Shown here one piece after another: positions 6,068 through 44,998 of a stretch of DNA of 64,000 nt. Under the pieces are notes generated by a model. That model did no database searches. It was not told the DNA's origin and saw nothing but the letters and a program-made list of their open reading frames with translations. The stretch lies in assembly GCA_003427395.1 (NCBI GenBank), contig BFEA01000046.1:3632933-3696932 (forward strand). Direction: 5' to 3'. Position 1 is the stretch's first letter. Every line of letters starts with the position of its first letter. A program made the translations under genes and the position numbers. This stretch comes from Chara braunii. Taxonomy: Eukaryota; Plantae; Charophyceae.

Positions 6068-8007
6068 ATGGACCAGAGGCCCGGAGAAGCAGACGAGGCC
6101 TATCAGGCCCGCATGCTCGCCTGGAGTACCGAGACAAAGAAACGGGCAGATGACGTTGCCGCAGCAGCAAAGAAGAAGGAAGAGGATGCCGAGCAGGCAC
6201 GTCTGATGGCAATTGAACAACAACGTCAGCATGACGATGCAGCAGCAAGGGCTGTCGATGAAGAAAGACACCAACGTCGTAAGAAGATATTTACCGGAGA
6301 GCAGGCGTTACTTACAATGGCAGCAGAATGGCGGACCGAGGCCGAGAATAGCAAGCTGGAGGATAGCGCAAACAAGATAGCGCTCCTTTCGCATCTCACA
6401 GACCTCCTAGCAACCTGCATTACACAACAGGAGGAGATCCACAGTCTCGACAACTCGCTAGCTCACGTCCAAAACCGCCTTCAGCGGTTGGAGCAGCCAC
6501 CAGCCGCCGCCGCCGATGCAAGCTCTTCCAATACTTCCGACCGCCTCAATGCATTGGAGATGGACGTCGGCTCACTCAAGGATGGCGTGCAATTACAGCA
6601 GACGGCGACGCAACAGTTGCAACAGCGGATCTGCACTACCGCCAACATCTCGAGTTCGGAACCGCGCGAGACAGCTCCAAAGTTTGACGGGCAGGATATC
6701 TTCTGCGACTCAATGAAGACAAATCCGGTTCCATGGTTTCGCAAGTTCGAGCTCACGCTGCAGCTCCACGACGTCAAGGAACACAAGCACCACGCATACT
6801 TGTACTCTCGCTCAGGGGGCGCGTGCCAGGCTTGGTTGGACAGCCTGTTGTCCAAGTACGGAGTGGTAGCCAACGACTTGCACACCAAGATCAGCTGGGA
6901 TGATCTGAAGGCGGCGTGGCACAAGCGGTTCCAGGTGGAGCCGCCGGAGACCAAAGCCATGGACAAGCTCATGGTCTTCGAGCAAGGCACGCTGCCGAGT
7001 ACGGACTGGATCGCCGAGTACCAACGCTTGGCGTCAGTCCCAGACATCCAGATGGGCTTCAAAGCCATCCGCCATTACTTCATCTCAAGGTCATGTCCGC
7101 TCCACAACGTCAAGGAACACAAGCACCACGCATACTTGGTACTCTCGCTCAGGGGGCGCGTGCCAGGCTTGGTTGGACAACCTGTTGTCCAAGTACGGAG
7201 TGGTAGCCAACGACTTGCACACCAAGATCAGTTGGGATGATCTGAAGGTGGCGTGGCACAAGCGGTTCCAGGTGGAGCCGCCGGAAACCAAAGCCATGGA
7301 CAAGCTCATGGTCCTCGAGCAAGGCACGCTGCCGAGTACGGACTGGATCGCCGAGTACCAACGCTTGACATCAGTCCCAGACATCCAGATGGGCTTCAAA
7401 ACCATCCGCCATTACTTCATCTCAAGGTCATGTCCGACATTAAGCAATGCCCTGACGCATGTTGAGGACACCTTGACGACGACGGCGGAATTGTTTGACA
7501 AGGCCGCGCAGATCATCATCACGAACAAGGAGGCCAAGAACCTCCGTTCATCTACGTAAGGGCCGAGCAGGGACCAGCATCGGCCAAGAGTGGTCGTGGT
7601 CGCAGCGGCAACGCAGTTTGACCAATCCAGCGAGGCTGTGTCTGCCAGTGAAGGGGACAGACTCGCAGCCGCCCGGGAAGGTGGCCGCCCCGACAGAGGC
7701 CGAGGACGCGGCAAGACGAAGACACACACCGCATCTAGCCCCGGGCCCGGTGCAGCAGCTCAGACACGCCTTAGAGTTGGAAGTTCCAAATTCATTGGTC
7801 AATCAGCAGGCTCGCCATAGTTTGATCGAAGAGGAGCCTCAGAGACTACAAGCGAAGCAACTTTTGTTTTGCCCATGGTCCCAATATGGCATCTCCGAGC
7901 AAGCATTCAAAGCACGCGAGAGATTCCATTATTGCCTTTGGTGCAACAGCGATCTTCATCAGACGCAGGTCTGCCCATTGAAAGGCAAGGGCAAACAGGG
8001 AAACTGA
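6068..8007 (+). pseudogene. gag: gag of gypsy element A, disrupted by an internal duplication, frameshifts and a stop
   Basis: Coiled-coil N-terminus, PKFDG..WF capsid-like segment and zinc knuckle CLWCNSDLHQTQVC. Stop codon at 7557-7559. Confidence 0.8.
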
Positions 8008-10355
8008 GCACCACTGAGAGTGACTCAACGACACTCTCGACGCCTTCGGAACCGGTTTCTTCGCGAGTAATCGGCCTTCATTCCGAGGCGCACGCGGAAG
8101 TCGATAGTCCTCCTCTTCTACTTTCTTTTGAGGACTATGCTGCCCGGCTCGTTCCTACGCCGGGTACTCAAGCTCAAGGACAAGAAGTGTGTGCGGTTTC
8201 TTCTCCGTCCGGCAACGACGACATATCGTCTTCAAGTGGTTCTTCACGGGATTCGGCACGCGAGTTCAACATAGAGGCATTGGACCCGCTCACGTCCGAG
8301 GACTTTGCATGGCTTCCTCTCCCGACCACAGGCCGCATGCCGGGACCGCAATGCGCAGCACTTAGCGCTCATCTCCACACTTACTTATCCTTCTATGCAC
8401 CACCAACTTCGCCGACGGATGACAAAGTCGCGGTGGGGGACATCCTGGCGTATACTACCAAAGTGGCCCGCGAGTTTCGCACGCATCGGTACGATGACAA
8501 CAACGCACCGCTCATGTATGTCCGCATTCAAGTTGGGCAAGCGTCCTGCAGCGCTTCGCTGGATAGCGGCGCGTCTCGCAACTTCATGAGCCAATCCTTT
8601 ATGCAAAGGGCTGGCGTTGGCGCACAATTTTGGAGGAAGGCAAACCCGACGGCGATCAAGTTGGCGGATGGAAAGACGCAACAACTTCTCGACCGTTACA
8701 TCGAGGCCGTACCGGTCTACTTCGCACCTCATGCATGCGAACCGGTGACATTCGATATTCTCGACACGGACTTTGACATCATTCTAGGAATGCCTTGGCT
8801 TGCAAGTGCGGATCACGCGGTCAACTTCCATCGGCGGACTCTTAGCTTTCGCGACCCCTTCGGCGCGGAAGTGGCGTGTACTATTCCTCTACCGCACCCT
8901 TCGATCCTGTGCCAAGTGGTGACGGCCAAATCATTCCGGGCGACTTGCGCTTACCAGCAGCCCGAGGAGATTGGCCTATGTTTCCTACAGACCGTCGCGG
9001 TAGCTGACTCTTCACCCACGGACTTGTCTTCGGACCCCCGTGTGGTGCGGTTGCTGGACGAGTTCGCCGACATCTTCGAGCCACCTACCGGTGTGGTGCC
9101 TGATCGGCCAATCTCTCACGAGATGATCCTTGAGGCCGGTGTCGTGCCGCCGAAAGGTTGCATCTATCGGATGAGCGAGGAGGAACTCGAGGTCCTCCGA
9201 GCACAACTCGACGATTTGTTGGCCAAGGGCTGGATCCGCCCTAGCAGCTCCCCATATGGAGCACCAGTTCTCTTCGTCAGGAAGAGGAACAAGGATTTAC
9301 GACTGTGTATCGACTACCGCAAGCTCAATGCGCAAACCGTCAAGAATGCGGAGCCTCTTCCTCGCATCGACGATCTTCTGGAGCGATTGGGCGGCGCAAA
9401 GTACTTTTCTAAGTTGGATTTGAAATCGAGATATCATCAAATCTCGATCCGGCCGAATGATCGCTACAAGACCGCGTTCAAGACGCGGTACGGGCATTTT
9501 GAGTGGGTGGTCATGCCTTTTGGCCTCACCAACGCCCCGACGACCTTTCAAGCGGCAATGACCAATGAGTTCCGTGCAATGCTGGACCGGTTCGTGCTGG
9601 TCTACTTAGACGATATTCTCGTCTATAGCCGGACATTGGAGGATCATCTTGGACATCTTCGACGAGTGTTGGAGACGCTCCGCCGCGCCAAGTACAAGGC
9701 CAACCATGACAAGTGTGAATTTGTCTGGCAAGAGCTAGAATACTTAGGCCATTTTGTCACACCGGAGGGCATCTTTCCGCTATCGGACAAGATTCAGGCC
9801 ATCCAAGAGTGGGCGGAGCCTCGGAACGTCACTGATGTCCGCTCGTTCCTCGGTCTTGCCGACTACTATCAGCGCTTTATCAAAGGCTACTCGAAGATCG
9901 CGGCCCACTTGAACAAGCTTCAATGCGAGGATCGGTCGTTTGACTTCGGAGAGGAGGCGCGGGGATCATTCTTCGCTCTCAAAGCCGCGCTATTGTTTGT
10001 GGAGGTCTTGCGGATATACGACCCGCTCTTGCCTACGCACGTCACTACGGATGCGTCAGGCTATGGCATTGGTGCAGTCCTCGAGCAACATGATGGTGTG
10101 GACTGGCACCCGATCAAGTACTTTAGCAAGAAAGTGCCCATCGTGCATTCCATTGACGATGCACGCAAGAAGGAGCTCCTCGCCTTCGTCCACGAGCGGT
10201 GGCGGCACTTCCTCCTTGGTCAAAGCCAATTTCGCTGGGTAACGGACAACAATCCGTTGGTCTTCTACAAGACCCAAGACAACGTCAACAACACCATTGC
10301 TCGATGGATGGCTTTCATCGACCAGTTCGACTTCTTTCCCGATCACATTCCCGGG
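7869..10355 (+). CDS. pol: pol of gypsy element A (protease-RT-RNase H), truncated before integrase
   Basis: LDSGASRNF (aspartic protease), CIDYRKLN, MPFGLTNAP, YLDD, TDASGYGIGAVL. Homology stops at FFPDHIPG. Confidence 0.93.
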
Positions 10356-12227
10356 ATTCGCTATTTCCAACAATGTGTGGCACATGAGTTTGCTGACTTC
10401 GTCTGACGCGGCATAGTGCTTCCTTTGCACTTCCACCTTCGCTTCCAACGCCTCGCACTGCCGGACCTGGATAGAGCATTGCCGCTTGCTTGCACTCTCC
10501 ATCGTCGACGTCATTAGCTCCCCGTGTTTCTCCATGCATTCCGTCAGCGCCTCGAAAGTCTGCTGCCTCGTGCGCTTCCTTTTCCCAGAACCGTCGGGGG
10601 TGCCCGTCGTCTGCGAAAAGCCTCGCGTCGACCCCTCCTCATCGTGTTCTCGCGCTGCACCTCCTTCCCCGTCCGCCACCGATTCAGGATCCACGTAAGA
10701 CGTCGAAGGCGGGCGCACGCCGCCAGACGCACCGATGTCTTCCACGTTCTTCGGGTGGATGGTGTGGTTCATCCCAGTCGACCCCTCTGTCTCGTCATAA
10801 ACTGCGCGATCCATCGTGAAATTGAAGCCCTTGCTTGCCCTCTCCTTCAACGTCAACTTGAAAAAGTCGGCACCCCGTGACGGTGATTGAAAGTGATGGA
10901 CTTTCTTGAACTGCTGCATTAGATTGTCCCACTTCTTCCCGCATTTCTCCGCATTCCTGTCCACGCCGACGTTCTTCAACCTTTGGGCGACGTCTTGCCA
11001 TTTCCATTCCCGCGGTTTCATCCGTGCGTATGCGTGGCCCATCCCCTGCATATGCGCATCTTGGTCACGTTTAGCCCTTATGAGGGCTATAATGTGTTCC
11101 ACGGACCAGAAGTTGCGCTTCTCCTCCGCATCACCGTCGCCTTCGCCACCGCTCCCCTTTCCCTGCCCTTTCTTCGCCCGCAGACGAGCATTGCGGCCGG
11201 AAGGCTTGGACTTCCCACCCTTACCAGCCATGTCGCTCTGCAACGATGGCGACGCGTGACCAACCCCCCCTTCCCCACACTCTACGTCGTTGTCGTCGTC
11301 GTCGTCTGCGTCCGCCGGTGGATCGTCCGTCTCGTTCTCGTTCTCCCGGTCTCCCACGTGAAGACGCTCCACCCCCCGTGTGATGTATTCCTCTCGCCGC
11401 AGCAGGTGATCCCGCCGCAGGTCCCTGCACACCTCCCTCCCGTCGCGACCATTACCAACATCCAAAAAGTCGGTCCCGCCGTCGACTCCGACGCCACGGC
11501 CTCGTGCCACTTCCGACGCCGCGGACAGGGGAGATGGCAACTGCATCCACTCCGGCCGACCCTTGGCGCCCTTGGACAGAGAGCCCACCCGTGGTTGGGG
11601 CGTCGACGAGTTCCGGTTCGTTCCCGCCGTCTCACTCGCCAACGCCCTCGTCCTCGCTGATCGATCAACAACTGTCAATTGCCCGCCTTCGTCGCCGGGG
11701 TGGGGTCGCACGAGCACTGTGCGCGATGGAGTTGTAGACCGCCCGGTGGACAAACCAAACGACAAGTTGACGCGGCCATCTCCTTCGTCTTCGCCAAGGC
11801 CAGGCCGAAGGAGTTCAGTGAATGATTGCTCGTACACGCCGGCACCCGTCCCGCACAACTCCGTGGCTGTCCACTCCTGCGTTGATCCGCTGCCCAACGA
11901 CACGGTTTGTGGCCGTCTCTCCACCACCTCCTCCTCGTCCGATGAGCCGGGGAGTGGTTGCAAGTGCGGTGGCAATGCATCATACCCAACCCGCTGGGAG
12001 GCCCTGCCAACGGTCGACAGGCTCCCCCCACACCGCCTCCCTCCGACCTGCTCCCCACCGGACCGGGGGATCGCCTGCCGTGCCTCCATCCTGGCGTCCT
12101 TCATCGAAGACCTTTTGCGTCGACGCGGCGGCACGTTCCCAAGGATGCAAACGCGGAAGAGAACCACGAGGAGCAGCAATAGGACAACGAGGATCAGCAG
12201 CGGCAGCCTGCGGAACACGTCAGCCAT
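10056..12227 (-). CDS. Harbinger-type Myb/SANT (trihelix GT-1-like) DNA-binding protein; C-terminus reads through into antisense gypsy pol. Start codon uncertain (ATG at 12227 or 12089).
   Basis: FWSVEHIIALIRAKR...KWQDVAQRL..GVDRNAEKCGKKWDNL trihelix motif, followed by a coiled coil; lies inside a Harbinger TIR. Confidence 0.8.
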   Translation of the reverse strand: MADVFRRLPLLILVVLLLLLVVLFRVCILGNVPPRRRKRSSMKDARMEARQAIPRSGGEQVGGRRCGGSLSTVGRASQRVGYDALPPHLQPLPGSSDEEEVVERRPQTVSLGSGSTQEWTATELCGTGAGVYEQSFTELLRPGLGEDEGDGRVNLSFGLSTGRSTTPSRTVLVRPHPGDEGGQLTVVDRSARTRALASETAGTNRNSSTPQPRVGSLSKGAKGRPEWMQLPSPLSAASEVARGRGVGVDGGTDFLDVGNGRDGREVCRDLRRDHLLRREEYITRGVERLHVGDRENENETDDPPADADDDDDNDVECGEGGVGHASPSLQSDMAGKGGKSKPSGRNARLRAKKGQGKGSGGEGDGDAEEKRNFWSVEHIIALIRAKRDQDAHMQGMGHAYARMKPREWKWQDVAQRLKNVGVDRNAEKCGKKWDNLMQQFKKVHHFQSPSRGADFFKLTLKERASKGFNFTMDRAVYDETEGSTGMNHTIHPKNVEDIGASGGVRPPSTSYVDPESVADGEGGAAREHDEEGSTRGFSQTTGTPDGSGKRKRTRQQTFEALTECMEKHGELMTSTMESASKRQCSIQVRQCEALEAKVEVQRKHYAASDEVSKLMCHTLLEIANPGNVIGKEVELVDESHPSSNGVVDVVLGLVEDQRIVVRYPAKLALTKEEVPPPLVDEGEELLLACIVNGMHDGHFLAKVLDRVPVHTIMLLEDCTNAIA

Positions 12228-12799
12228 GAAACAGTCGATGACGACGGCAGCAAACGGAAGACAACGCGGGCGCCAACATAACAGCGGAGCGCAGTGCTGC
12301 AAACGGTCGTCCTGAGGACGTCTTCGGTCTCCCACGCTCAGTGCGTAATTGGGAGCTGGAGTGCGGCCTGAAATATTCGTATCTGCCGACCGTTGGGACA
12401 TTCCCGCAGATTGCCAAACGCGACGACGCAAGACGGCACCTTCTGGACGTGGGGGATGCCGGTTGCCCGCAAACGGTAACTGTTGCAGTGAAGCCAAACG
12501 TTGGCGACCCGACATGTCCGTCGAGTCGCAGGCAGGACCATCGATGGACCAGACGAAATTGAAAAATGTCGTCGAAGGAGCTGGAGTCGACGCCCCGATT
12601 CTTCCGAAAGCTCGACCTCCGAGGGACCATGGGAGGTCCCTTGGAGAAATCGCCAAAATGGCTGTGTGGCCCCGAGGAATCCCCGAGGAATCCCCGAGGA
12701 AATGTTTTCACATTTTCTTTTCCGTGTCTTCCCCGAGGATGAGTGGAACGGGCATTTCCTTGGGGAATTGCGGGCCCCGAGGAGTGTCGAACGAGGCCC
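10356..12799 (-). mobile_element. PIF/Harbinger transposon half carrying the Myb/SANT-like ORF; one TIR retained
   Basis: TIR GGGCCTCGTTCGACACTCC at 12799-12781 (minus), near-identical to the TIRs at 49674, 53045 and 54736. Confidence 0.82.
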
Positions 12800-15724: not shown

Positions 15725-15787
15725 GTCCTTCAGGACATCCGTTAAAAGTGGAACGACACACAGGATTAGCATGGCCCCTGCGCAAGG
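15725..15787 (+). pseudogene. U6: U6 snRNA 3'-truncated retrocopy
   Basis: GTCCTTCAGGACATCCGTTAAAAGTGGAACGACACACAGGATTAGCATGGCCCCTGCGCAAGG matches the plant U6 5' two-thirds and is followed by an A-rich tail. Confidence 0.88.
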
Positions 15788-17788
15788 GGAAAAAAAGAAA
15801 AAAACGAATAGAAACAGCTTGTCGCTGAGGATCATTGGAAAATTTCTTCCAAAAAAAAATGAGAAATAAGGAAAACAAACATCAACTTCCCCGCAGTTCA
15901 TCGGTTTAACCCCCCCCCTCTTTCCCCTTTAACATCCCTCACAGCATCATTAGATGCCCACACAATGACACCCTTATCTGTGCTCTATTTGACATATGCA
16001 GGATAACTATTGTCAAGACTGAAAAGATGTCTCGATTCCCAGATTTGTCCAATAGCTGTCCGGCTCGTACAACCCAGGTTCCCTGGACAGCATGTGCTAC
16101 ATTGGCGGGGGAGTTATGAGGGGAGGGGGGTATCCGTAAGATTGTTGTGCCCAACATGATTTGATTTTATGACCTGATTGGCATCAGTTCTACATATAGA
16201 CAACTCAGTCACAATGTAGGTACAGTTCCCGGCTTGTCTTCAAAAATCACGAAATAGTTAAACTTTAAAATACAGAAAAGGGACCACAGTCCTGCTCAAC
16301 TACAAGAAGCCACTGCTTTTCATGTTGATAATGAGACATCAACACAAAGACAGCAGTGTAGGCAGAGCAAAGAGAGAGCACACATCATCCCCCTCCACTT
16401 CAACCCTGAATACCAGCCACAGGGCTCCAGATGTGCTCACGTAATGCCATCTTGCATTCCCAAACGGCAGTTCCTAATAAGAAAAGAGAGACCAAAGAGG
16501 ACAGTACGAAATATTGAGAGGAAAGCGAAAGCCCGGAACAGACTCCACATCCTCCTCCGCAGCCCATCGGTAAGTACTGCAGCCAGCAACAGGCTCCTGA
16601 GGAATTCATAAGGGCAAGCTGGTGTTCTGCATCACTTGTACTGCACTGCATTCCAAAATGACATGTCGTGCAGTTTCATCCAGATGGGACAGAATGCACT
16701 CCATAATCACTGGACTCGTTTCTTTTCACATTTACAGGGAGCTTTCACTTCACATTCCACCATGGGGAGAAGCAGCATGTGATATGCTTTTTCCCTACTT
16801 CCATCAAGCAGTCGACACATCTAACTGCGACGCCCCTCCACAATCAGAGGATAGACCGCTGAACCAAACTGCAGTCAACGGTTTCCCAAATGTCCCACCA
16901 CGCAGCCTGTAGACGTACTAGACGAGCCTTCTGTAAAGGGAAAACTAACACTGCACTGATTGCAGAGCATATCATAGATGGCTTGCTTCCTTCAACGCTA
17001 CAAGCTGGCATCACACGCCTCATTGCACACATCCAGCACACCAATTGATTCTGCGTGTGTGGTGTTTAGTTGCATTTCTTCCCCGTTGTGAACGCATCCC
17101 TGAGATTCGAGCAGGCAGCCAATGCACGCCTACCTGACTTGCTTGTGCAGTGCACTTTCACAGAATTCAGCTGTACTTTGTCTGTCACAGATAGGGTATA
17201 CTCGGTGTTGACTTCTGAGCGATCAAACGAGGTGTTAATGCCACCGTTCAGCATTGCTCACCTGAATAGACAAGTTTGAGTGAAATTCAGTGATTCTTAT
17301 GAACAATCTGACATTGTATACACGAGGAAAGAAACAGGCACCGACTTTTGAGAATTGCCACCACACACTCGTACACCCACCACGCATTGAGAGGGGTTTT
17401 CCTAAAATGCATACCAAACATCTCTATCACTACCAGTTTGCTGACCGCTGTACACCAAAAGCATGCTCCGGATGCCACCAGTGACAACTGGTGACACCAC
17501 CCAGCTCACTTAGCTGTAGCCAGTGAGTTGCTCTGCTTGATATGAATTACGCAACTAAAGAGGGCTACAAGCAACAGCAATCACAAAGAAATGCTCCTCC
17601 TAACTGGTTTCCAATCCAGATAAGAATATACTTGGTGCAACTGTTGTTCCTCTGTTCTCAGCTGCCAGTAAAATTGCAGACAGAGATAGATATCCCTCAA
17701 TTGAATTCACAACCGAGGGCTGCCTTCGTTTTCAGAAATTTTGGTACATTTTACCATACATACAGAATATGCCGGAAGAGGATGTGGC

Positions 17789-20700
17789 TCACGGCCCCCT
17801 TGGCCCAGAAAGCTTTGGGCCTCCCGTTCTTCCTTGCACAGTCGATCTTTCCCTTTGGACCTGAGGAGGTGTTGTCTTAAGGTTTCGTATTCTAGCTACT
17901 GGCACTGACATTCTTGTGGCAAAGGAATCATTCTTCACATCAGTGATTTGTTCACCAGTGCCAGCTGTAAGACTCTCATCAGACCCATCCACAGAGTCTA
18001 AGTCCCCGATATGGCCATCGCCTGCGTACCCTGCATCTACATCACATCCATCCCCTCCCTCTAATAAAGCCCTGGCAACCCCATGATGATCGACCTCTGC
18101 ATGGGTTCCCCCTTGAAAATCCCAGTTCACTCCTCCTATATCGCCTGCTATGTCTCCCACATTCAGCAGCCATGTGTCTGGTTGAGCCTCTCGCCTTCTG
18201 GAACTAGATTTCATTGCCATCTTCGGGACATAGCTTGGACACAAAGGATCCCTCAGCGAGTCAGAAGGAAATTCGTTTTGATGGCCGAAGTCCCTCACCC
18301 TGTGACCAACATCTTCCCTGTAACCACCATACCAGTCCCATTCATTGCTGGCCTCCAGGAATCCAGGCTCATTCATAGAAACCCGTCCACCTTGGAGTGT
18401 CGGCAGAAAATCCACACGAGGTGAGGCCCCCCCACGGGATAATGGATAGTAATGCAAAGCTTGATCATTCATACCTACCGCCGATGAGACTCGCCCCTCT
18501 CCCAGACTGCCTGGCCTCAACACTTGCCCGCCATAGTGAGTCCCCATTCTTCTATGCCCCTGCCTGTCAACAGCACCACCATAGTGATGCGGGCCCCAAT
18601 GCATGGACAGATCGATTTGCCCAGCACGTCCTTGAAGACCATGGCAGAGATAGTGTGCGTGAGGAGATGTGGGGTGGAGCTCAAGTGCTGCCCAAAGCAA
18701 TCCCTGTTCATATCTCACGGAATCTTCACTTACCCTCCCCATCCTCCCCTGGCTTCTTACGGGTAGGTTCTCAGGCTCACTGAAGTAAGCTTGGCAATCT
18801 GCCCAGGAAGGAGCTCCACTCAGGTGATCGTCATGTTCAAAGTGACTTTCCAGAACGCTGGCATCCTTAGCCAAGTGAGAGTACGCTGCTTCCTCCAACC
18901 TTGCAGATGAAAGCTGTTGCAAGCGCTTGCCCGCTCTGTCGCCTGCACTTCCCATGCTTTCACTGCCTACGGAAGGCCTGATGTCACGGCCACTCCAGTA
19001 CTGACCCTGCTTCATTGAAGATTCGGCCCTGATGGAGAACTCGTCTGCTTTGCCGAGACTACTATTAGATTTGCCAGAGGACCTCTTCTGCCTGGCATCC
19101 CCGTTGGCACCACTTGGTTCTTCCCAGCTACTTCCTCCGCTTCGAGATGATGGCTTACCACTCTTCAAAGAGTTCACAGGACCCCTGCTATCAAGATGCA
19201 GTGGCACTCCCAAAGGGCTTGAATAAGAATCTCCTCCCTTTCCAGACACACTGGCTGTGCTGGACCGATCTTTCCCGGCATGGAATTCTCTGAATGCATT
19301 CTTTCCATGCTCACTTCCACGTATGCGGCCTTCAATCAGCAGTTCCTTTGAATTGGCAACGGTAGCTGTCATGCAACTTGTATGCCCAGGCTTTGGAGGA
19401 GACGTTGGGTGTGTATTCCCAGTGCTGTACTTCGGAGAAACTTCTACACCGGCAGCAGACCGACGATCGGCATGCGATTCCATGCTCCTCCGATCCGACT
19501 TCAGCAAGCGGTCGTGCAATCTTAACCGCTCTTCCTCATGCCTCCGTTGAAGCTTGTGTAGTTCCTGCTCGTGCCTGCGTTCCAGTTTCTCCATCTCTAT
19601 CCTAAACTCGTCCATCTCATCACCCTTCTCCACACCCCATATGAATTGGTTGATGACGTGCTCCGATTTCCTGTTCCTGATGTTCTCCTCCTCCGGATAA
19701 TCATTCTCAGACAGCCCCTCGGGCATCCCTCTGATACTGCTGGGGGGAAACCTGGTCGGAATACCCAAATCCCATCCCTGACCATTCTGATCACTTTTCC
19801 ACATCTGATTTTTCCTCTTCCTACCACTGACAGAGCTCCCCTGCTTTTGACTACGTGCAGAGGCAGAGGCAGAGGCTTCATTGTTTTCGTCATCGTCATC
19901 AGGATCACTAAAGCGGGCCAAAGAGCCTTTCCCATCCGACAACATGTCAGACCTACGACTTCTATTCCAAAGCATTATTGCTTCGCGGTTTCCTTGCCCT
20001 TGCCCTGGTTCACCCGGCTGATGAACAAGGTCATCCTCACCTGAGGACTCGGACAAATATCCCGAGGATCGTTGTTCGTACCAGTAATTCATGGATTTAG
20101 GATGGGGATGTTCGTATGTGACCTCTGCAAACCGGCCATAGTGGAATTGGCATCTCGTGGGCGAGCTCATTTCATGAAGTGAAGGATGGTCATATGAGTG
20201 GTGAGGATGAGGTCCCAATTTCTGACCAGAGTCTGAATCGTGAAGAATCCCCTGAGGGGATCGACTTGGGTACATGTATGGTGAGCTGGAACCCGATCCA
20301 GTTCTCAAGGGACGTGGATCATCGTCAGCAGTGCCAGGGAAGGACGGACCCACGAAAACTTCAATTTCACTCTCTTCCCCGTTATGCTCATTCGGTGTAA
20401 CATCAGCACCGTGGTCCCACTCACTGTCAAGATTTGCAATCTCAGCATCGATCATCTGTGCTATGATTGACACATCTGAACGGTGAAGCTCCAGCTCGGC
20501 GACCATCTCTTGCGCTACATCCAATGCTGTGTCTTGGTCAGGTAAAAAGGAGAAGTGAATGTTCCGCACTTTGTTCTCCTCCAAGTCAGGAATCGTCAGC
20601 CTCATGTAAATGTCATCTGGCCGTCTCCTCCCTTTGACAATCATGCGCCTTGATGATGTTCGACTGAGCCTGCGCTGGTCACTCGTGTTTGTCTCTTCCT

Positions 20701-21796
20701 GTCTCTTCAATTCAAGACGCTGTGTATCCTCCGCTTCAGGCAGCTTTGGGTCTGTCACAGCGCGGTCTTGAACATGCTTCACTGGTTGCCGGTTGTCCGT
20801 ATCCCCTTTGCCTTGGATCCTGTTATCCAATTCCCTCCTGGGATCGGGGTATGAAATCCGAGGTGGCTTAGCAGGGATCAAGAGCGCATCCTCGGGCTCA
20901 TCTGATCTAAGAAAAGAGTCTGCTAGCAACTCGCGAGCAGGAAGGCGGCACGAGGCCCCAGCCAAGCATTTCTCCACAAAGGCACGAACCTCAGGGTCCT
21001 TCACCTTGTCCAAGGCAGCAGGCTTTTTCCCAGATATCACCTTCTTGTATATCTGAGCAGCGTTATTACATTCGCTGTACGGGTACTCAAACGTGACCAT
21101 CTCCAATAGGCACATTCCAAATGAATAGATGTCAACTAGTTCATTGTACTCTTCTTCATATAACTCGGGTGCCATGAATTCAGGTGTGCCTATAACACTG
21201 TGAGCAGCATGAGCCTGGCGGAGAATGGCTGCTAGCCCCAGATCACCAATTTTCACCTCACCTTGATTCCCATTTATAAAGATGTTATCACACTTCAAAT
21301 CTCGATGGATAATTGGGGGATCATGACTGTGCAGATACAACAACCCTCTGAGAATCTGTCGTGACCAGCTCTTCACAGCTTTCATATCCACATGTTTGTG
21401 CCTCTTTCGGTACTGCCTTAGAGTGCCAGAGGTGAAGATTTCAGTGATGAAATTGACATTCTTAGACTTCGTATCAACCCATGAATTGTAGAACTTGATG
21501 ATGTTTTTGTGTTTCAAGGTCTTCAACAAGTGCACTTCCGAGTAAAGCCGTTCGAGGTCCTCAGGCTTTTGGAGCGCATCCTGGATCTTCACCTGATTCC
21601 AGGCAACTTCTATTCCATCCACTTCATCAAACGCTCTGTACACCGTCTTGAACGCACCCTTGCCAAGAATTTCATCATACCGCCCATACCGACCCGTGGG
21701 ATCCACCTCCACAAATTCAGGCTCCCTGTCATCCGGGTCTGGAGGATTTGGATCTGTAGAAGCTGGAGTATCGTCATCCCCCTTGAGTTCAACCAT
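17789..21796 (-). CDS. WNK: WNK (With No Lysine) serine/threonine kinase, 1335 aa, single uninterrupted ORF
   Basis: [10 protein letters not shown] (catalytic Lys in subdomain I), [44 protein letters not shown]. Autoinhibitory domain RNIHFSF...[22 protein letters not shown] motif and coiled coil. ATG at 21796. Confidence 0.97.
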
Positions 21797-24647
21797 CCTC
21801 AGGCTTGAAGGGACACTCCTCCACCCCTCCCTGATATGACAAGCCAGAACTCCAAGGAAGCTGTCTTGTACTCAGCACCGTACAATATTGTTGTTCATAG
21901 TCCCACCTGCCTCTGGACCCTGCGCTCCCCTCTCCCAACCTGCCAGCTCACTCACCCCCCAGATGACTTCTGAAGCACGACACAGCTCCCAGCATTCGAC
22001 AGACCTCCACGCGCTCCCAGCATTTCGAACTAAGTCATCATCTGCATGTAACCGGATGTTTCGTCAGCTTGGCAGCAAAATAAATGTCGCTCCAGTTGTT
22101 CCCGCTGAGAGAGAAACATTATTAACATATGACGATATATAGACGAACACAAAATATAAAGGTGACGAAGCTCGAGACATGGTCCCCCTATGCGGTATAT
22201 CTCCAGAGGTCCCCACCAGAAGTTCACCAGTGCATTAGTCTATCAAACCAGAGTAGAAGCAAGGAAATAGAATCTGTTTAAAACGGGCCAGACAGAAGTT
22301 ACCACATTTCAGATGGATGCATCAGTGATCTATATGCGCATGCCCGACTGCCTCATCGCCATTAGATATAATTTTCATGATACTGAATGATGAGGATATG
22401 AACACGAGGATGAAGAAGACAAGGATGACATTACAGAGGACACATATATAGCCACAGCATGATACCTTATGGTATGCACCATGAATGATTTGATGTCCAG
22501 CAGCTGTTTCCTTGCAAGAAATGCACTGCACTCAGTGTTGCATAACTGCATACCCAGAAGCCAAACAATACCGACCCTCGGTTCTCACAATAGAATTATC
22601 ATTCTCCACTCTTGATATTGTGTTCTAGTGAAAGAGAATGAACAAGCTGTGCCCCAACCGCACCCAAATGATGATTCTTCGGAACGTACTCTAACAATGT
22701 GGCACCAGGAAGATGATGAGATCAAGAAATACTACGTAGCAGGAAGATGATGAGATCAAGAAATACTATGTAGCATACTGCATTGCATACCAAGTTCCAT
22801 ATGTAAACAGAGAACAGACTGATCAGCTTGCTATCTGAACTCTCTGAAAACTATCTACCGAGCACTAGCACCTCAGCAACCCTTGAAGCACAACAGAAAA
22901 AGCCATGGCATGCCACAACTACCCTTGTTCTCTTGTGTCAGCCACATAAATAAAACCCACTCCCCACTCGCTGTTATTCTGGAAGGTCACAACAAGCTGA
23001 TAAGAAAGTTGACCCTGAGCCTGATTCCCCAAGGCTCAAAACAACTTTTTGCTGGCTTCTCCATAACACACCTTCAGAGAAGAGCCACACTCATCATATA
23101 AAAGCAAGATGCACGCTCTTGAGAGAGACTGAGACGCTGTGTGTGTGACAACAAGAGCAACTCTGACCCCATCAGCACCCCAACTACAATGTAGGCAACC
23201 GCATCCCTGTGGTGCGCACACAGCATGGTAGGGCAGGATGGAGCTTCCATCTCTTTTGGAGAGGGGAGAGGCAGAACAACAGCTTTCCTGTGGGGTCCTG
23301 CAAAAGCATCTCCACATGGAGTCTTCAGCACTCAATATGGCCTTCAGTCTTAAATACAGCCTTAGTTAGGCACAGCCTCAACACACTGACTCATTCCAGT
23401 AGTTCCCACTTAGAGACATTGTCAGGCCTCCAGTGTGCAGGCTTATCAAATAACCCCCATCAATGTACCGCTGCCATGTCAACCCCCTCTCCTCCTCCTG
23501 CAAAACTATCCATTTCCAATTGACATCCCCTCTCCTCTAATCCAACTACACATGATAGTGTTATCTGATAATTGGCAGGAAAGCAGCCTTCTGAATCACA
23601 TGCCTCTTTCTAAAATGCAGGATTTCTTCCAACTCATCAGCTCATAGAGAAGTATAACCAGAGTGTTCTTCTTTTCTAGATACTCATATCCAGGCCTGCA
23701 TAACACCTGTATGATTATCTATTGCCGCCTCAAGTGTCATCATATTCTAATATATCGTGGTGGAACTCCACAAACAGGAGACGGAATCGCAGACAACCGG
23801 CAAACCAAACTGTTTTCCTCGTTCCAAGAAGAAAATCTTAATTTTCTACACCAAACATACCTACCAACACAACGTGTCAAACTGCTGTAAGATATATCGT
23901 TTTGCCAGAGCATGCAAAGAATCTGGGTCTTTCGGCACCGACTCTTCTCCGACAACATAAAGGAATTTAAGCGCATGCGAAGAATCTGGGTCTCTCGGCA
24001 CCACTGTTCTCCGACAGCACGAAGAAATTTTTGATGGCAAAATGACATTCGATAAAGTCAAGTGCAAGTATGAAAGCATGATCTCACCACATGGACAGTA
24101 GAAAGACAAGCACGGTTGATCCTCACACAGAAGGGCCATTGGAGAAACTTCTGCCTGTGCAGATACAAAACTATTCCAAGGGGATGGACACTCTTACTTG
24201 TCGCTCCTTCCGCAAAATGTGGTTAGTGTCCACCAACCTCCCAATCCTTCAGACCCAGAGTCACCATATCCAGTAACCTTTGCCTTCTCCACGAATAGCA
24301 GACACATCCAGTGCCCATCATGCTGAGGTAACCAGATCCTCTTTCCATTTCCACCAGCTCGAACTACTGCCTAAACTGCCTTGGCACTGCTCTCCGGCAT
24401 GCTCTAACTAATGATTACAGCTATTATCTTCAGTGGGTCCCCTCTGGACAACATAACCTCATCTGGTTATGCTGAAAAAGGTAGAACCACATGCTTCGAA
24501 CTCGTGAACGAGATAGAGCATTCTTCTCACCACAAGCAGTACAACCAATCCCCAAAACTGGCTGAACCCATCGTGCCACGACTTCGAAAACTCCACGTTC
24601 GGACAAAACTCACAACTACCCACAATCTCCCCCCCCCAAAAAAAATG

Positions 24648-28130: not shown

Positions 28131-28159
28131 AATACCACACCGTGTTTTTTGTTTTCTTG

Positions 28160-28255
28160 AATTTCAACCATTTCTCAATTTGTGTCTCATCCTCACACAG
28201 GGGCCATGCTAATCCTGTCTGTACCGTTCCAATTTTAACGGATGTCCCGAAGGGC
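28160..28255 (-). pseudogene. U6: Near full-length variant U6 snRNA copy
   Basis: Minus strand GCCCTTCGGGACATCCGTTAAAATTGGAACGGTACAGACAGGATTAGCATGGCCCCTGTGTGAGGATGAGACACAAATTGAGAAATGGTTGAAATT aligns end to end with plant U6. It has an A-rich tail instead of a U-run terminator. Confidence 0.92.
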
Positions 28256-29267: not shown

Positions 29268-32200
29268 CCAACCATCGCCGTCATCTTGCTGCAGCACTGC
29301 GCCGATTCCATACTGGCTCGCATCCGTAGTAACTACGAATGTCAGTTTGGGATCTGCAATGCGGAGTACTGGGTAACTTACCAAGGCTTCTTTTTTAAAG
29401 CTTGAAAGGCATTCGTGCACGCAGTGTCCCAAGAATAGGGAACATTTTTACTGGTCAACCGCGACAATGGACGAGCAACAATAGAGAAGTGGGGCACAAA
29501 CTTTCGATAGTATGACGCGAGACCAAGAAAGGACTGCAGTTCGTGAATGTTTGAGGGTTGAGGCCAATTGCGTATGACCTCAACCTTGGTTGCCTCAGGC
29601 TCCAGGCCTGCAGCAGACAACCCATGCCCAAGATAGATGACACTATCCTTCCCAAACTCAGATTTCTCTAGGTTGAGATGGAGTTGCGTCTTCTTGAGGA
29701 TGGTGAGCACTTCCTCAAGGTGCTTGAGGTGTTCCTCCATGGATTTGTTGAAGATCAGGACGTCATCGAGGTAGACCACCACGAACCGGCCAATCTGTTC
29801 GCGGAGGACCTTGTCCATGAGGCTTTGGAAGGTGGCTGGTGCGTTCGTTAGACCGCAGGGCATTACGGTAAACTCATGAAACCCATCGCGTGTTTTGAAC
29901 GCAGTCTTGTGCTGGTCCGCAGGATCGACTTCATCTGGTGGTAGCCAGACTTCAGATCGATCTTGGAAAAGACCTTGCACCCACCTGCGGCGTCAAGCAA
30001 GTCATCTATGCGGGGCAAGGGATAGGCGTTCTTTCTTGAGATGCGGTTCAGACCGCGATAGTCAATACACATGCGAAGTTTGCCTCCCTTCTTTGAAACA
30101 AACAAGACAGCAGCACCAAATTCAGACTCGCTAGGCTTGATCCACCCTTTGACAATCATTTCATCGATTTGTCGTAGGAGTTCCTTCAATTCGTCAGGTC
30201 CCATCCGGTATACGCAGCCCTTGGGAGGAACAGCACCCTCGACCAACTCGATGGTGTGTCGGACCGATCGTGTGGGGACTCCACGTGGCTCGGCCAAAAC
30301 TTCTGGAAACCGATCGAGTAGGTTTTGGATGTCTGGTGGAACGGGAGGGGGTGGAGGATCAGCAAAGGGATCACCAAGATCCGGTCGCAGGTCGCGTATA
30401 GAGACAACCGAATCTGAAGTAGGGTCATTAGGACCATTAAAGGGTAGAGAAATAAAGGTGTCGGGAATAGTAGTACTAGAAGTAGTATCACTAGCTAAAG
30501 TAGTAGCGGAATTAACAGCAAAAGTAGATGGCACATGGGCACGACAAACAAAGGCAACATACAACCGTTCGTCCTCCTTGCGCCATTTCTTGCAGAACTT
30601 CATAGCATTTAGAAAAGTCACTGGGGATTCGTGCTTCTCATCCAAAAGGACGGAAAGCTCGTTCCCTTGAGCATCTTTGACCATGAAGAGCGACTCCTTC
30701 TACTTGGTCCACTCGCATTGGGACTGCAGCCAGCCCAAGCCAAGGACGGCGTCGAAGGGGAACTTGTCAAGGACATAGAAGTTTAACGCGTGGGTGACAG
30801 TTTTGTCCTTGTCAAAGGTCATGCGCACACCTTTGACTGCATGCGTAGAAAGACAACCTCTTTGTTGCCAACTTCAGTTCGGTAAGGGTTCTGCAAGGCC
30901 ACTTGCTTCATCCCCAAGTCCACCTTGCGTATCCCGTGCGGTGACATGAAGTTAGCCGTAGCACCACAGTCAACCAAAACACGGAGATAGCGGTGGTTTA
31001 TGAGAAGTTTGAAGAAGATCAACTTCACGGTCTCTTGGGCACGCTGCTGTTTCACCTTGCCCCAATGCTCCAAGTGGTAGTGGAAGTTGATTGCCCAAGA
31101 CTCCTCCCAAGGCTCGACATACAAAACACTACTCACCTCAGCCTTGTCTTCAGCAAGTGGTTGGGCTTCAAGCGAGGACTGCTGATTTGCAACAGATTCA
31201 GTCTCCCCTGCTGTAGAGTTTGCTGAAGTTGACTTAACGCCCGATTCTGGTTTCCCTGCAGCCTATAACAATCTTGTACCTTATGGTTTGGTTTTTGGCA
31301 ATGCAAGCATACCCCCTTCTTGAGTCTACCCCGCCAGTCATTTTCAGTAATCCGGAGGTGGACCCAAGGTTTCGTAGTCGCATTATCCGGTTTAGGTGGG
31401 GTCTTGACTCCCTTGGGAAGTTGGACATAGTTTTTCCCTGCACTCTGATTCGGCCTCTTTGTATTGCCAGTCTTTTTTAAGGCAGTAATTTTTTCTTCTT
31501 CGTGGTTTGCGTCCGACTCATGGACCGAAGAACAAGTATCAGGGTCCTGTTCTTGGTCGTCACCAAGAGTGGGGTCCTCTGCATCGGCTTTTTCTTCAAC
31601 CTCCAGCAAATCATGCACAGCAAAACGGTTGCTGCCTTTGAACCGTCTGTCGCCCATGGGCTTTTTGTTGCCTGTTGTGGTGACGAGGTCTACAACCTCA
31701 AAACTGACTATGTCCTTCATTAAGGTGAACCAGTCAGTATAACCAATGAAGTCCCTGCCTAGGCGATTAGTGAAGTTGGTGGGAACCGCGCCTTTAACCA
31801 CATCCAAGCAAGATTGAGCAGTCAATTCCAATCCGGGTGTAGCGAACATCTTGCTAAGGTAGGTCTGCACGCTTTTCATGGAGCCTCTCCACTTGCTGCG
31901 CTTGGTTTTGTCAAGTTGGATTTTTGCCCTTGCTGCAGCGTGTGGATCAAGGTATTGTGAAACCAGGAGTTCCTCAAGGGAGGCAACCGGGGTGGCCTTA
32001 AGCCATCTTGTTAGTTCAATTTTAGGAATCCCAGCTTGCGTAGCTTGGACCTCTAAGAAGCCCCGCACGACCGGCTCGACATTCATTCCCATGATCACGG
32101 ACTCGGTCTCAGATTGCGTTCCTAGAAACCTCGAAATATGCCCTCATGGAGTTGATCCAGGACCTCACGTCTTCTTTGTCGTCGTACTTAGACGATACTT

Positions 32201-41377: not shown

Positions 41378-41490
41378 ATCAAAGAACTTTTTTTTTTTTT
41401 TTTTTGAAATGCGATTGCGTTGACACTGGGCATTATCCAATTCGACGTAGTCAAGCTTAAAAACAATCAAAAATTCTACGTAATTAAGTT

Positions 41491-41968
41491 TAAAGCTATG
41501 TTACCAGCGCAACCCGGGACCACTTGCTCGGCAGAGCCAAAAATGGACAAATAAATAAAAAAATTAAAAATGACAATTGAAAAATCTATTTTTTCAATTT
41601 TAATTTGTCGAAGTTTTTTTTCGCTCCAATTTTAACGGATGTCCCGAAGGACATGGCAAAGAATTCCGATCCGACCCTGAGGCAAAAGTTGCTCAGTTTA
41701 TTTTTCTGAACAACTTCTTTTGTTTTTGGTTCTTACCTTTCCCTGTGTTGGGAAACACGGGAAACACACTACTCCGAAAAGTTTGGAGGCCCGGTGGAGG
41801 CTCGACAGGAAAGAAAAATAGAGAAAACATTGGGACCTTGTGGGCCTGTGGTTACACAAAAAAAAAAAAAAAACTAAGACTTCGAATCCAGCGACGTACG
41901 TCCGGGAAGGCGCTCACGGAGGTGGGAGTCACACCAGTGCAGGCGACCAGGTTGGTAACACAGGTTTA
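41491..41968. mobile_element. MITE carrying a U6 5' fragment
   Basis: Imperfect TIR TAAAGCTATGTTACCA...TGGTAACACAGGTTTA; internal similarity to the 39167 MITE. Confidence 0.65.
41621..41652 (-). pseudogene. U6: U6 5' fragment (32 nt)
   Basis: GTCCTTCGGGACATCCGTTAAAATTGGAGCGA followed by A7. Confidence 0.8.
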
Positions 41969-42059
41969 AAGTGTAAACAACACAACAATCAAAATTCTGC
42001 GTCATCAGTTTTTAAAAGCATGACAATTCTACGTAATTAAGCTTAAAAGCGATCAGCAA

Positions 42060-43620
42060 TCAATGTCGTCCGCTCGGACCTCTCGACAATAATGGGAAGG
42101 AGCGTTGTAGGAGTATAGTCTAAATTGTGCCATTTTTGACTTGCCAGTGCAAAAGGGCAAAAGGGAAAAAAGTGACGACCCAGCTAATTCAGAGAAACTC
42201 TAAGGAGATTTGGGAGGAGGGGGGTACACTCACCTTCAGAACGATTGAGGACTTCGACTCCTATTCGTCTATCCCAAAAAATAAGGCGGTTATTACTTGG
42301 AGCCTTCACCGGATTTATCAGATGTCATCTAATGCGGAGTTAGCAGTGCTGGGCATACTCACCTTACAAAGACTCCTACGATTACAAAATTACCCGAAGA
42401 AATAGTTCGAAGATTGCCTGGAAAAATTCGTCAGAAGACGGGCACCGTCATGGACAGTATGGGAAAATAAATATTGTGGATGGTAAATAATGAGATGCTA
42501 CGATATAACTGAGGGACCATTCACGATTCTCAGTAACCTACGCGAATATGAGAAAGTTTTGAAGAGTATTTTCCATTTGCCACGTTATTTCGACCACGGA
42601 CCCTGTGAAAATCCACAACGTAGAAGAGCAGGATTTCATGTATCCCCTACGGATTTCTTGCAGGAAACTTTTCAAAAAGGACAATACAAGGAAGGTTGGG
42701 CCTGGAAACTCCGCATAGCTTACTCCTTTTCGGATTTATTTTCTGTTTAAATTAAATTATTTTTTTTATTTTTCGGACCTAATTTTCGGATTTATTAATT
42801 TCCGGATTTATTTCTCGTACAATTATTCGAATATTTTTCGGAGATTTTCTCAGATTTTTTCTTTTATTTTCGAAATTTTCGGCGAATTTCTCGGATTTCA
42901 TTCTTTGTTTTTCTAGAAAAAGACGAAACCAGGTAAGATGGGCCTGGTAACTCTGCGTAGCTGTTTTCTTTTCTTTTCATTTCTTACGGATTTCAATTTA
43001 AGGTTTTCGGAAAGGACGAAACCAGGTAAGATGGGCCTGGTAACTCCGAGTAACCGACCTCTCTTCAACCCTATATTTCGGATGCAAAATTTTTTTGGAA
43101 CCCATCTTTAGGTACCAGTGGCTTTCGGTGAAGGAAAAACGTGTTACGGGGAAACTGAAACTAAGGGAATACGGACTCTACCGAGAGTACTCTGCAGTAA
43201 CTTAGGATGAAGGTAAGTATTTATCTACGGACTCTACCGAGCACTCTGCAGTAACTTAGGATGAAGGTACGTATTTATCTCCAAGTTAGAACCTCACCTT
43301 TACTTGGAATTGTGTTCTACCCTTCTGATGAGCCTGAAATCTGGCTCCGGTCGAAACCGGTAGAGCGAAGCCAGAATACCACCGTCCGTAACGGGCGGAG
43401 GTTGTAGCCATAGCTAGCAGCTCTTGGTTCCGAGCTCCTTTTTTTCTGAAGAGTTAGCATAGCTTTTCGATTCTGAGTTACACATTTTGGCATGTTGCAC
43501 TCGCCACGTGCTTGTGTTTTGCGTACTGCTCACTTCAGTATCTGCTGACGTCGGCCCTCGCTCTACAACTCCAGCAGTGCAAAAGGAACCGGACTCCCAA
43601 AAAAAAAAAAAAAAAAAAAA
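42060..43620 (+). mobile_element. Penelope-like element 3' fragment: RT C-terminus (42127-42486, internal stop) and 3' region with hammerhead
   Basis: PFLT..., FRTIEDFDSYSSIPKNKAVITWSLHRIYQMSS...LRLQNYP is a PLE thumb-like motif; downstream hammerhead motif. Confidence 0.65.
43312..43379 (+). ncRNA. Type I hammerhead ribozyme (candidate)
   Basis: Core CUGAUGA (43325-43331), GAAA (43353-43356), palindromic ACCGGU stem III, GUA cleavage triplet (43360-43362). Stem I is CUU/GAG plus GUGUUCU/AGAAUAC. Confidence 0.78.
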
Positions 43621-44063
43621 AGGGGCTTTGTTTTATTTTAAAAAATAACAAAAAAGAAAAAAAAAGAGTTAAAATCGATCACAATTGTACGTAATTAAGT
43701 TTCAAACCAATCACAATTTTTTTTCACGAACTGGAGTCTAGAAACAATCACCATTTCTAAAACAAATTCCAAACGTAAGTTCTAAAGCAAGTTCTAAATG
43801 TTAGTTCTAAAACAATTCCCAAAACAACCACACTTCACGATTACACCTTAGAATATTCCTTTTTCACGTACGAACGGTTTATCGAGCTATTCAATCCAAA
43901 TGTCCGTTGATTCGCGCACCGTTACCAAGCAACTCTTCGCTTGGGTTTCGTCATGCGCAAGCGCCGTACCGCTTTTTCACTAAAAACGCACACGAGAGGA
44001 ACCACGTGACTGGACCACGGACGAAACTTCGGCCAGATTCATTCCGGTTTGCGCGCCGGGGGG

Positions 44064-44998
44064 NNNNNNNNNNNNNNNNNNNNNNNNNNNNNNNNNNNNN
44101 NNNNNNNNNNNNNNNNNNNNNNNNNNNNNNNNNNNNNNNNNNNNNNNNNNNNNNNNNNNNNNNNNNNNNNNNNNNNNNNNNNNNNNNNNNNNNNNNNNNN
44201 NNNNNNNNNNNNNNNNNNNNNNNNNNNNNNNNNNNNNNNNNNNNNNNNNNNNNNNNNNNNNNNNNNNNNNNNNNNNNNNNNNNNNNNNNNNNNNNNNNNN
44301 NNNNNNNNNNNNNNNNNNNNNNNNNNNNNNNNNNNNNNNNNNNNNNNNNNNNNNNNNNNNNNNNNNNNNNNNNNNNNNNNNNNNNNNNNNNNNNNNNNNN
44401 NNNNNNNNNNNNNNNNNNNNNNNNNNNNNNNNNNNNNNNNNNNNNNNNNNNNNNNNNNNNNNNNNNNNNNNNNNNNNNNNNNNNNNNNNNNNNNNNNNNN
44501 NNNNNNNNNNNNNNNNNNNNNNNNNNNNNNNNNNNNNNNNNNNNNNNNNNNNNNNNNNNNNNNNNNNNNNNNNNNNNNNNNNNNNNNNNNNNNNNNNNNN
44601 NNNNNNNNNNNNNNNNNNNNNNNNNNNNNNNNNNNNNNNNNNNNNNNNNNNNNNNNNNNNNNNNNNNNNNNNNNNNNNNNNNNNNNNNNNNNNNNNNNNN
44701 NNNNNNNNNNNNNNNNNNNNNNNNNNNNNNNNNNNNNNNNNNNNNNNNNNNNNNNNNNNNNNNNNNNNNNNNNNNNNNNNNNNNNNNNNNNNNNNNNNNN
44801 NNNNNNNNNNNNNNNNNNNNNNNNNNNNNNNNNNNNNNNNNNNNNNNNNNNNNNNNNNNNNNNNNNNNNNNNNNNNNNNNNNNNNNNNNNNNNNNNNNNN
44901 NNNNNNNNNNNNNNNNNNNNNNNNNNNNNNNNNNNNNNNNNNNNNNNNNNNNNNNNNNNNNNNNNNNNNNNNNNNNNNNNNNNNNNNNNNNNNNNNNN
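44064..44998. other. Assembly gap (N run); further gaps at 46760-46845 and 59176-59325
   Basis: N characters. Confidence 1.

Follow-up and report, generated by a model that had tools for sequence, protein, structure and literature searches.

The question raised by this locus is whether a 68-nt segment on the forward strand of the Chara braunii genome (assembly GCA_003427395.1, contig BFEA01000046.1) is a hammerhead ribozyme and, if so, what carries it and whether it still works. The segment lies at positions 43312-43379 of the window, which is the whole 64-kb stretch of DNA that was analysed. A preliminary description had read it as a self-cleaving RNA in the 3' region of a Penelope-like retroelement, about 830 nt downstream of the C-terminus of a reverse transcriptase (RT). 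From the analysis reported here, the segment is probably a degraded and solitary copy of a hammerhead module of type I carried by C. braunii retroelements, most likely Penelope-like ones (Chlamys or PLE-X type) or their non-autonomous derivatives.

The letters quoted in that description agree exactly with the sequence over all 68 nt, and its account of the core and of the stems is borne out. All nucleotides required in the conserved hammerhead core (C3-A9, G12-A14, the A15.1-U16.1 pair and an H17 other than G) can be read from the sequence, with U16.1 at 43361 and H17 being A43362 (Table 1). Stem I is composed of two helices flanking an internal loop, as had been proposed, and both can be read from the sequence. 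The proximal helix contains the pairs U43324-G43363, U43323-A43364, C43322-G43365, and C43320-G43367, with a C x C mismatch at 43321/43366, while the internal loop has A43319 on one side and AAGCC (43368-43372) on the other. In the window copy helix I thus totals 4+7 pairs and one mismatch. Helix II has four pairs, namely G43332-C43352, which is the G10.1-C11.1 closing pair, C43334-G43350, U43335-G43349, and G43336-C43348, and one mismatch between C43333 and U43351. Given that only helix I is left open, with helices II and III each capped by a loop, the motif is of type I. The palindrome ACCGGU described for stem III is present, and the motif has the short helix III with a dimer-permitting palindromic loop that characterizes Penelope-like hammerheads. 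Two copies of ACCGGU could form an intermolecular helix of 6 bp, for which a duplex energy of -10.3 kcal/mol was computed. The complementarity of AGCC (43369-72) to GGCU (43343-46) also holds, and it stretches to 7 nt (43340-46 with 43369-75).

Table 1. Features of the hammerhead motif and of the unit that carries it (positions within the window).
Feature	Position	Strand	Basis or remark
Helix I, distal 5' strand GUGUUCU	43312..43318	+	Pairs with 43373-43379, 7 pairs including one G-U
Helix I, proximal 5' strand CCCUU	43320..43324	+	Pairs with 43363-43367
Catalytic core box CUGAUGA (C3-A9)	43325..43331	+	Sequence
Helix II and 11-nt loop II	43332..43352	+	Sequence
Most conserved block, common to 28 contigs with unlike flanks	43340..43375	+	Contig depth, loose ends
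Core GAAA (G12, A13, A14, A15.1)	43353..43356	+	Sequence
Helix III palindrome ACCGGU: A15.1-U16.1 pair, CCGG cap	43356..43361	+	Sequence
Predicted cleavage site, after A17 (43362)	43362..43363	+	Inferred from hammerhead numbering
Helix I, 3' strand: GAGCG proximal, AAGCC internal loop, AGAAUAC distal	43363..43379	+	Sequence
Downstream 7-bp hairpin CCGUCCG-UAA-CGGGCGG	43382..43398	+	Sequence; recognisable in the diverged continuation of paralog contigs
Non-coding, moderately repeated unit bearing the motif	42480..43598	+	Several paralog contigs, 80-95% identity, length variants
Tandem duplication, 93 nt x2	42918-43092	+	Repeat analysis
Tandem duplication, 54 nt x2	43170-43280	+	Repeat analysis
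A23 run	43599..43621	+	Closes the carrier unit

The motif is non-random. It was sought with a descriptor made of the core CUGANGA, 8-40 nt, GAAA, a loop III of 4-8 nt, U, and a nucleotide other than G, with at least three contiguous pairs in helix I, at least one pair in helix II and, optionally, a palindromic loop III. With the palindrome included, the sole match on both strands of the 64 kb is 43312-43379, and there are no matches across 100 dinucleotide-preserving shuffles of the window. When the palindrome condition is dropped, 0.19 matches are obtained per shuffled window. One more weak match without the palindrome occurs at 23274-23328 on the reverse strand, with a helix I of 3 bp and a helix II of 2 bp. 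Its 8-nt loop III is non-palindromic, and it was taken for chance, being within the shuffle expectation.

A pattern scan of metagenomes gave three matches, none of which belongs to the family of the Chara motif. Two of them are due to chance and lie inside a coding-looking stretch, a putative ATP synthase alpha gene. The third (L001:716-753, contig Ga0268261_10052117) is a clean type I hammerhead with a helix II of 6 bp and the helix III ACCGGU. It contains the same GAAACCGGUAGAG segment as the Chara motif and is unrelated to its family. At L001:573-753 this hammerhead and an adjoining copy in reverse complement make up a long inverted repeat, a layout similar to that of Penelope-like insertions placed head to head, and the contig has only two ORFs of at least 90 aa. 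No GTDB genome contains the 23-nt core string of the Chara motif, and the motif pattern has no match in IMG/VR; on these grounds a bacterial or viral origin was rejected.

The search with hammerhead models suggested in the preliminary description had a divided outcome, with our own descriptor recovering the motif and the Rfam hammerhead models returning nothing. No hammerhead family was detected in Rfam at the gathering thresholds, nor at E values of up to 10 when stretches of 701 nt and 101 nt were searched. The clean metagenome motif of the same subtype, used as a control, was likewise missed, and for this reason the Rfam result counts little against a hammerhead: hammerheads whose helix III consists of a single pair fall outside the Rfam models. 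Thermodynamic folding did not recover the hammerhead fold from the monomer or from the dimer. The fold of lowest energy is instead a long hairpin of -23.3 kcal/mol that competes with the hammerhead, while the hammerhead pairing alone gives from -1.1 kcal/mol in the window copy to -12.7 when both majority letters of the paralogs are introduced. Folding programs usually fail to return the hammerhead fold for such motifs, and given that the tertiary interactions of the core lie outside the energy model, the folding result is uninformative on whether the motif is a hammerhead.

The relatives of the motif in the genome were explored with Logan contigs from two C. braunii DNA runs (X1 and X2), aligned to 42480-43598 at 80% likeness. 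Both runs derive from a single study, probably that of the genome project, and short alignments of this kind are biased to near-identity. The summed contig depth is 20-110 across most of this region and rises to 390-450 exactly over two bins, 43316-43391. Position 43366 is covered by 28 contigs and only a few cover the flanks, and the alignments often begin at 43320, 43321, or 43340 and end at 43375. The jump in depth together with the shared alignment ends means that the motif is a conservation island within diverged repeat families. It is therefore multicopy and more conserved than its surroundings (28 contigs versus a few), as is characteristic of Penelope-like hammerheads, and the copy number of 43340-43375 amounts to some tens of copy-equivalents. 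The flanks of the paralog contigs fall below 80% identity and, by eye, are about two thirds identical to the window and still homologous. The distal helix I strand at 43312-43318 is likewise not kept above 80% identity in these contigs.

Inside the motif, well-supported variants are found at three sites only. At 43366, nearly all of the 28 contigs read G in place of C, which restores the C43321-G43366 pair of helix I. At 43333, 11 contigs, which make up about three quarters of the local depth, also carry G in place of C, giving a G-U pair with U43351 in helix II and breaking the rival hairpin GAGCC/GGCUC of the minimum-energy fold. At 43320, two contigs have U for C, and U43320 still pairs with G43367. 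All three sites are compatible with the hammerhead pairing, each change being one-sided, with no two-sided compensation among them. The CUGAUGA box and the GAAA block show no well-supported variant among the contigs that cover them. Given that the paralogs read pairing letters at 43333 and 43366, the mismatches at these positions are private defects of the window copy. The decay that had been suspected from the imperfect stem II is thus supported by the majority of the paralogs, which pair G43333, and helix I adds a second lesion at 43366. Judged from this comparison of sequences, 43312-43379 appears as a degraded member of a conserved module that is repeated in the genome, and it is considered likely that it derives from a retroelement module with a functional type I hammerhead.

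Downstream of the motif, the inverted repeat at 43382-43398 is also seen, with low agreement, in the loose-end consensus behind 43375 of the paralog contigs. At 43419-43445, 60 nt 3' of the motif, there is a 5-bp hairpin (AGCUC/GAGCU) with an 8-nt loop, followed by two C's and a run of seven T's. This arrangement resembles a terminator and is possibly a Pol III stop signal.

The Penelope context that had been proposed for the motif finds no support within the window. The supposed RT C-terminus could not be confirmed, given that the frame-1 reading at 42124-42747, which contains a TAA at 42484, the point taken for that C-terminus, has no RT homologue. This reading has two stops in 208 codons; shuffled sequence would yield 0.09 such readings per 5 kb, which makes it only mildly unusual and at best a weak hint of an old coding sequence. 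Its pieces contain no Pfam domain, and a word search found no homologue of the 42487-42747 piece. An exhaustive HMMER search of the 42124-42402 piece against 1.84 billion representative proteins gave a single spurious match, to a CotH/SprB bacterial repeat protein of 3100 residues, which was rejected because its score is summed over repeats at 23% identity. With no RT returned by Pfam, word search, or HMMER, the upstream quasi-ORF was rejected as an RT. A word search with the spurious ORFs that overlie the motif gave no match, and an exact look-up of ten small ORFs gave none either. No RT, GIY-YIG, or other endonuclease domain was found in the ORFs between about 39.9 and 50.6 kb, a region in which part of the sequence is concealed by a gap of 935 N (44064-44998). 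The window contains RTs of the Ty3/gypsy type only, at 7.8-10.4 kb and 29.4-30.7 kb, at least 13 kb from the motif. No terminal repeat flanking a Penelope-type RT ORF is found at the locus, and the 64 kb contain no second copy of the motif, either in tandem or nearby (under 50 kb). A tRNA or SINE origin of the CCGGUCGAAACCGG segment was considered and dropped, given that ARAGORN finds nothing.

Other features were observed in the window. Ty3/gypsy remnants with protease, RT, RNase H, and integrase zinc domains occupy 730-2219, 7821-10403 on the forward strand, and 29381-30699 on the reverse strand. On the reverse strand, at 10059-12707, an open frame of 883 aa contains a DNA-binding domain of the Myb/SANT-like kind and is antisense to the 3' portion of the gypsy pol; a protein kinase ORF of 1335 aa is found at 17792-21796 on the same strand. 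The Rfam scan gave two full U6 matches, at 15725-15823 and 28157-28255. The reverse strand of 41620-41652 can be read as the 5' stem-loop plus the initial ~30 nt of the U6-like snRNA of the window. This fragment is preceded by a segment of about 50-70 nt that recurs five times (repeat family D16), at 41620-41704 on the reverse strand, 39269, 40217, 54941, and 63897, and these repeats look like dispersed fragments of a U6 promoter plus 5' end. A further motif of about 40-50 nt with TACGTAATTAAG occurs three times at 82-84% identity, at 41457-41494, 42012-42060, and 43669-43717. Each copy lies some tens to about 140 nt past an A- or T-run, and two copies bracket the hammerhead unit. An old target-site repeat and the terminus of an element are both conceivable origins of this motif.

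The block at 43340-43375 invites other explanations of what is conserved in these repeats. It is bounded by the perfect 7-nt complementarity UCUGGCU/AGCCAGA, which encloses a CCGGU-CGAA-ACCGG hairpin, and when folded alone it gives -15.5 kcal/mol versus -8.0 +/- 2.4 for shuffles, that is, about 3 sd below them. The GGCU/AGCC pairing corresponds to the inner four pairs of this complementarity, three letters of which also belong to the distal strand of helix I. This pairing may be the activating loop-loop contact that had been proposed, a competing inactive conformer, or a real conserved element in some families, and covariation cannot choose among these readings because both segments are invariant in the contigs. 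If the conserved unit were the 36-nt hairpin itself, which could be a structure of the retroelement 3' region recognized by a protein or by the RT, the locus would hold no ribozyme and the CUGAUGA upstream of the block in this subfamily would be incidental. The ends of the island coincide with those of the 7-bp stem, and Penelope-like RTs initiate reverse transcription at internal structured sites (PMC11167929). In addition, about 7 contigs in X1 and 3 in X2 diverge already at 43340, and their consensus (agreement only 0.59) has no CUGAUGA within 30 nt upstream. Nonetheless, this explanation is unlikely, given that GAAA, ACCGGU, and the UA cut site stand in exact hammerhead order within the block and that at least about 15 contigs keep the CUGAUGA region 43320-43339 with no variant listed. 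The majority letter G43333 also favors the hammerhead helix II and disrupts the local hairpin, and the lack of descriptor matches in the shuffles argues in the same direction. The near-invariance of the block across families with differing 5' halves, together with its stable folding when alone, is the reason for considering a dual-purpose module as well. The block would then be part of the hammerhead in one conformer; in the other it would form a hairpin that either inactivates the ribozyme or acts in RT recognition or initiation, and some families might keep the hairpin function only. This is regarded as a quite improbable reading.

With the type I hammerhead module retained as the preferred reading, the state of this particular copy and the nature of its carrier have to be considered. 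Processing of the locus transcript by self-cleavage, as had been claimed, is unlikely given the two stem defects and the lack of a second copy for a dimer. The private C43333 and C43366 each remove a pair and no second motif exists in the 64 kb, so the copy is probably inactive or nearly so, and that it still cleaves is very doubtful. An active copy would have to process the transcript as a monomer, through the contact of loop II with helix I, or in trans with paralog RNAs. The intact catalytic core nucleotides, the loop-loop complementarity of 4-7 nt, and the low-level transcription of paralogs in poly(A)+ RNA would be in line with this. On the other hand, a one-pair helix III is reported as inactive in monomers (PMC4209133), the competing fold is strong, and the RNA data speak of the paralogs. 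Of two oligo-dT runs, one gave no reads and the other gave 15, with seven near-identical reads on 42632-43049 and about four over the motif, all of which have the paralog letter G at 43366. There is no pile of read ends at 43362/43363 among these only ~4 covering reads, all from paralogs. Taken with the two private mismatches and the missing partner, activity of this copy is highly improbable. As for the carrier, the A23 run that closes it is likely the 3' end of a retroposed unit. The unit could therefore be seen as another poly(A)-ended retroposon that contains a hammerhead, either SINE-like and dependent on a LINE or retrozyme-like and non-autonomous, an explanation in keeping with its lack of coding capacity and with the hairpin and T-run at 43419-43445. 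It is nonetheless held to be rather unlikely, given that non-autonomous derivatives share their 3' ends with autonomous Chlamys elements (PMC8557442), that animal non-LTR retrozymes have been argued to come from Penelope pLTRs (bioRxiv 10.64898/2026.07.22.740005), and that a LINE ORF is also absent nearby. If retrozymes derive from pLTRs, the distinction between a Penelope-like and another retroposon may be a matter of degree.

A Penelope-like link remains the most likely origin of the motif, a view based on the literature (PMC8557442, PMC4209133) rather than on the locus itself. The carrier, at about 42.5-43.6 kb, would be a non-coding repeat unit, 5'-truncated or non-autonomous, with an A-run at its end. 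In intact relatives the RNA would fold as three helices around the CUGAUGA/GAAA core. Given that helix III has only one pair plus the CCGG loop, two motifs, from tandem units or from two transcripts, would need to pair through ACCGGU, and each would then cut after A17.

Canonical type I hammerheads have a helix III of 1-2 bp with a palindromic loop of 2-4 nt, are inactive alone and active as dimers, and occur in Penelope-like elements, including those of plants (Cervera and de la Pena 2014, PMC4209133); the action as a dimer is also credited there to Forster et al. 1988. The Chara motif agrees with them in its helix III, composed of one A-U pair and the 4-nt palindrome CCGG, in its G10.1-C11.1 pair, and in an internal loop of helix I that could contact loop II. 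It differs from them in the long loop II of 11 nt, in the missing tandem partner, and in a weak helix II, with two wobbles in the majority form and a mismatch in the window copy. The min-HHRs of metazoan Penelope pLTRs have no loop 3, usually an extra nucleotide between A9 and G10.1, and a helix II of 7-8 bp (PMC4209133). The Chara motif is like these in being placed in retroelement repeats and in its probable reliance on dimerization, but it shows none of their three structural features. For this reason, of the label "minimal type I" used in the preliminary description, the type I topology stands and "minimal" is imprecise.

Plant LTR retrozymes are likewise non-coding, hammerhead-bearing, non-autonomous repeats, but they carry type III hammerheads in true LTRs (PMC4918200), whereas the Chara motif is of type I and in single copy with no LTR pair, and it is therefore not a retrozyme of this kind.

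The closest comparison is found in C. braunii itself, where Chlamys-2_cBra, an element of the Chlamys type that combines a gag-like ORF with a canonical 3' hammerhead, and an endonuclease-less PLE-X type with canonical hammerheads and a genome-wide distribution have been described (Craig et al. 2021, PMC8557442). In the same work, Chlamys derivatives from Chlamydomonas are described that are non-autonomous and have their 3' ends in common with autonomous families. The Chara motif belongs to the same species and is likewise a multicopy type I module near the 3' end of a retroelement-like repeat, a likeness drawn from the published descriptions of these elements. The difference is that the window copy is accompanied by no RT, gag-like, or endonuclease ORF. 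Given that no retroelement gene stands beside the motif and that hammerheads of this kind are already published, the locus represents a commonplace relic rather than a novel system. Its significance hardly goes beyond annotation: retroelement repeats with hammerheads were already on record in C. braunii, and the locus is one more copy of these, in degraded form. The failure of Rfam with the short-helix-III subtype suggests that such motifs are under-annotated in streptophyte algae. Hammerhead cleavage is dispensable for Penelope insertion in vitro, with no read ending at the cut site (Frangieh et al., PMC11167929), and the conservation of the 3' part of the Chara motif across families with unlike 5' parts bears on what hammerheads do for Penelope-like elements.
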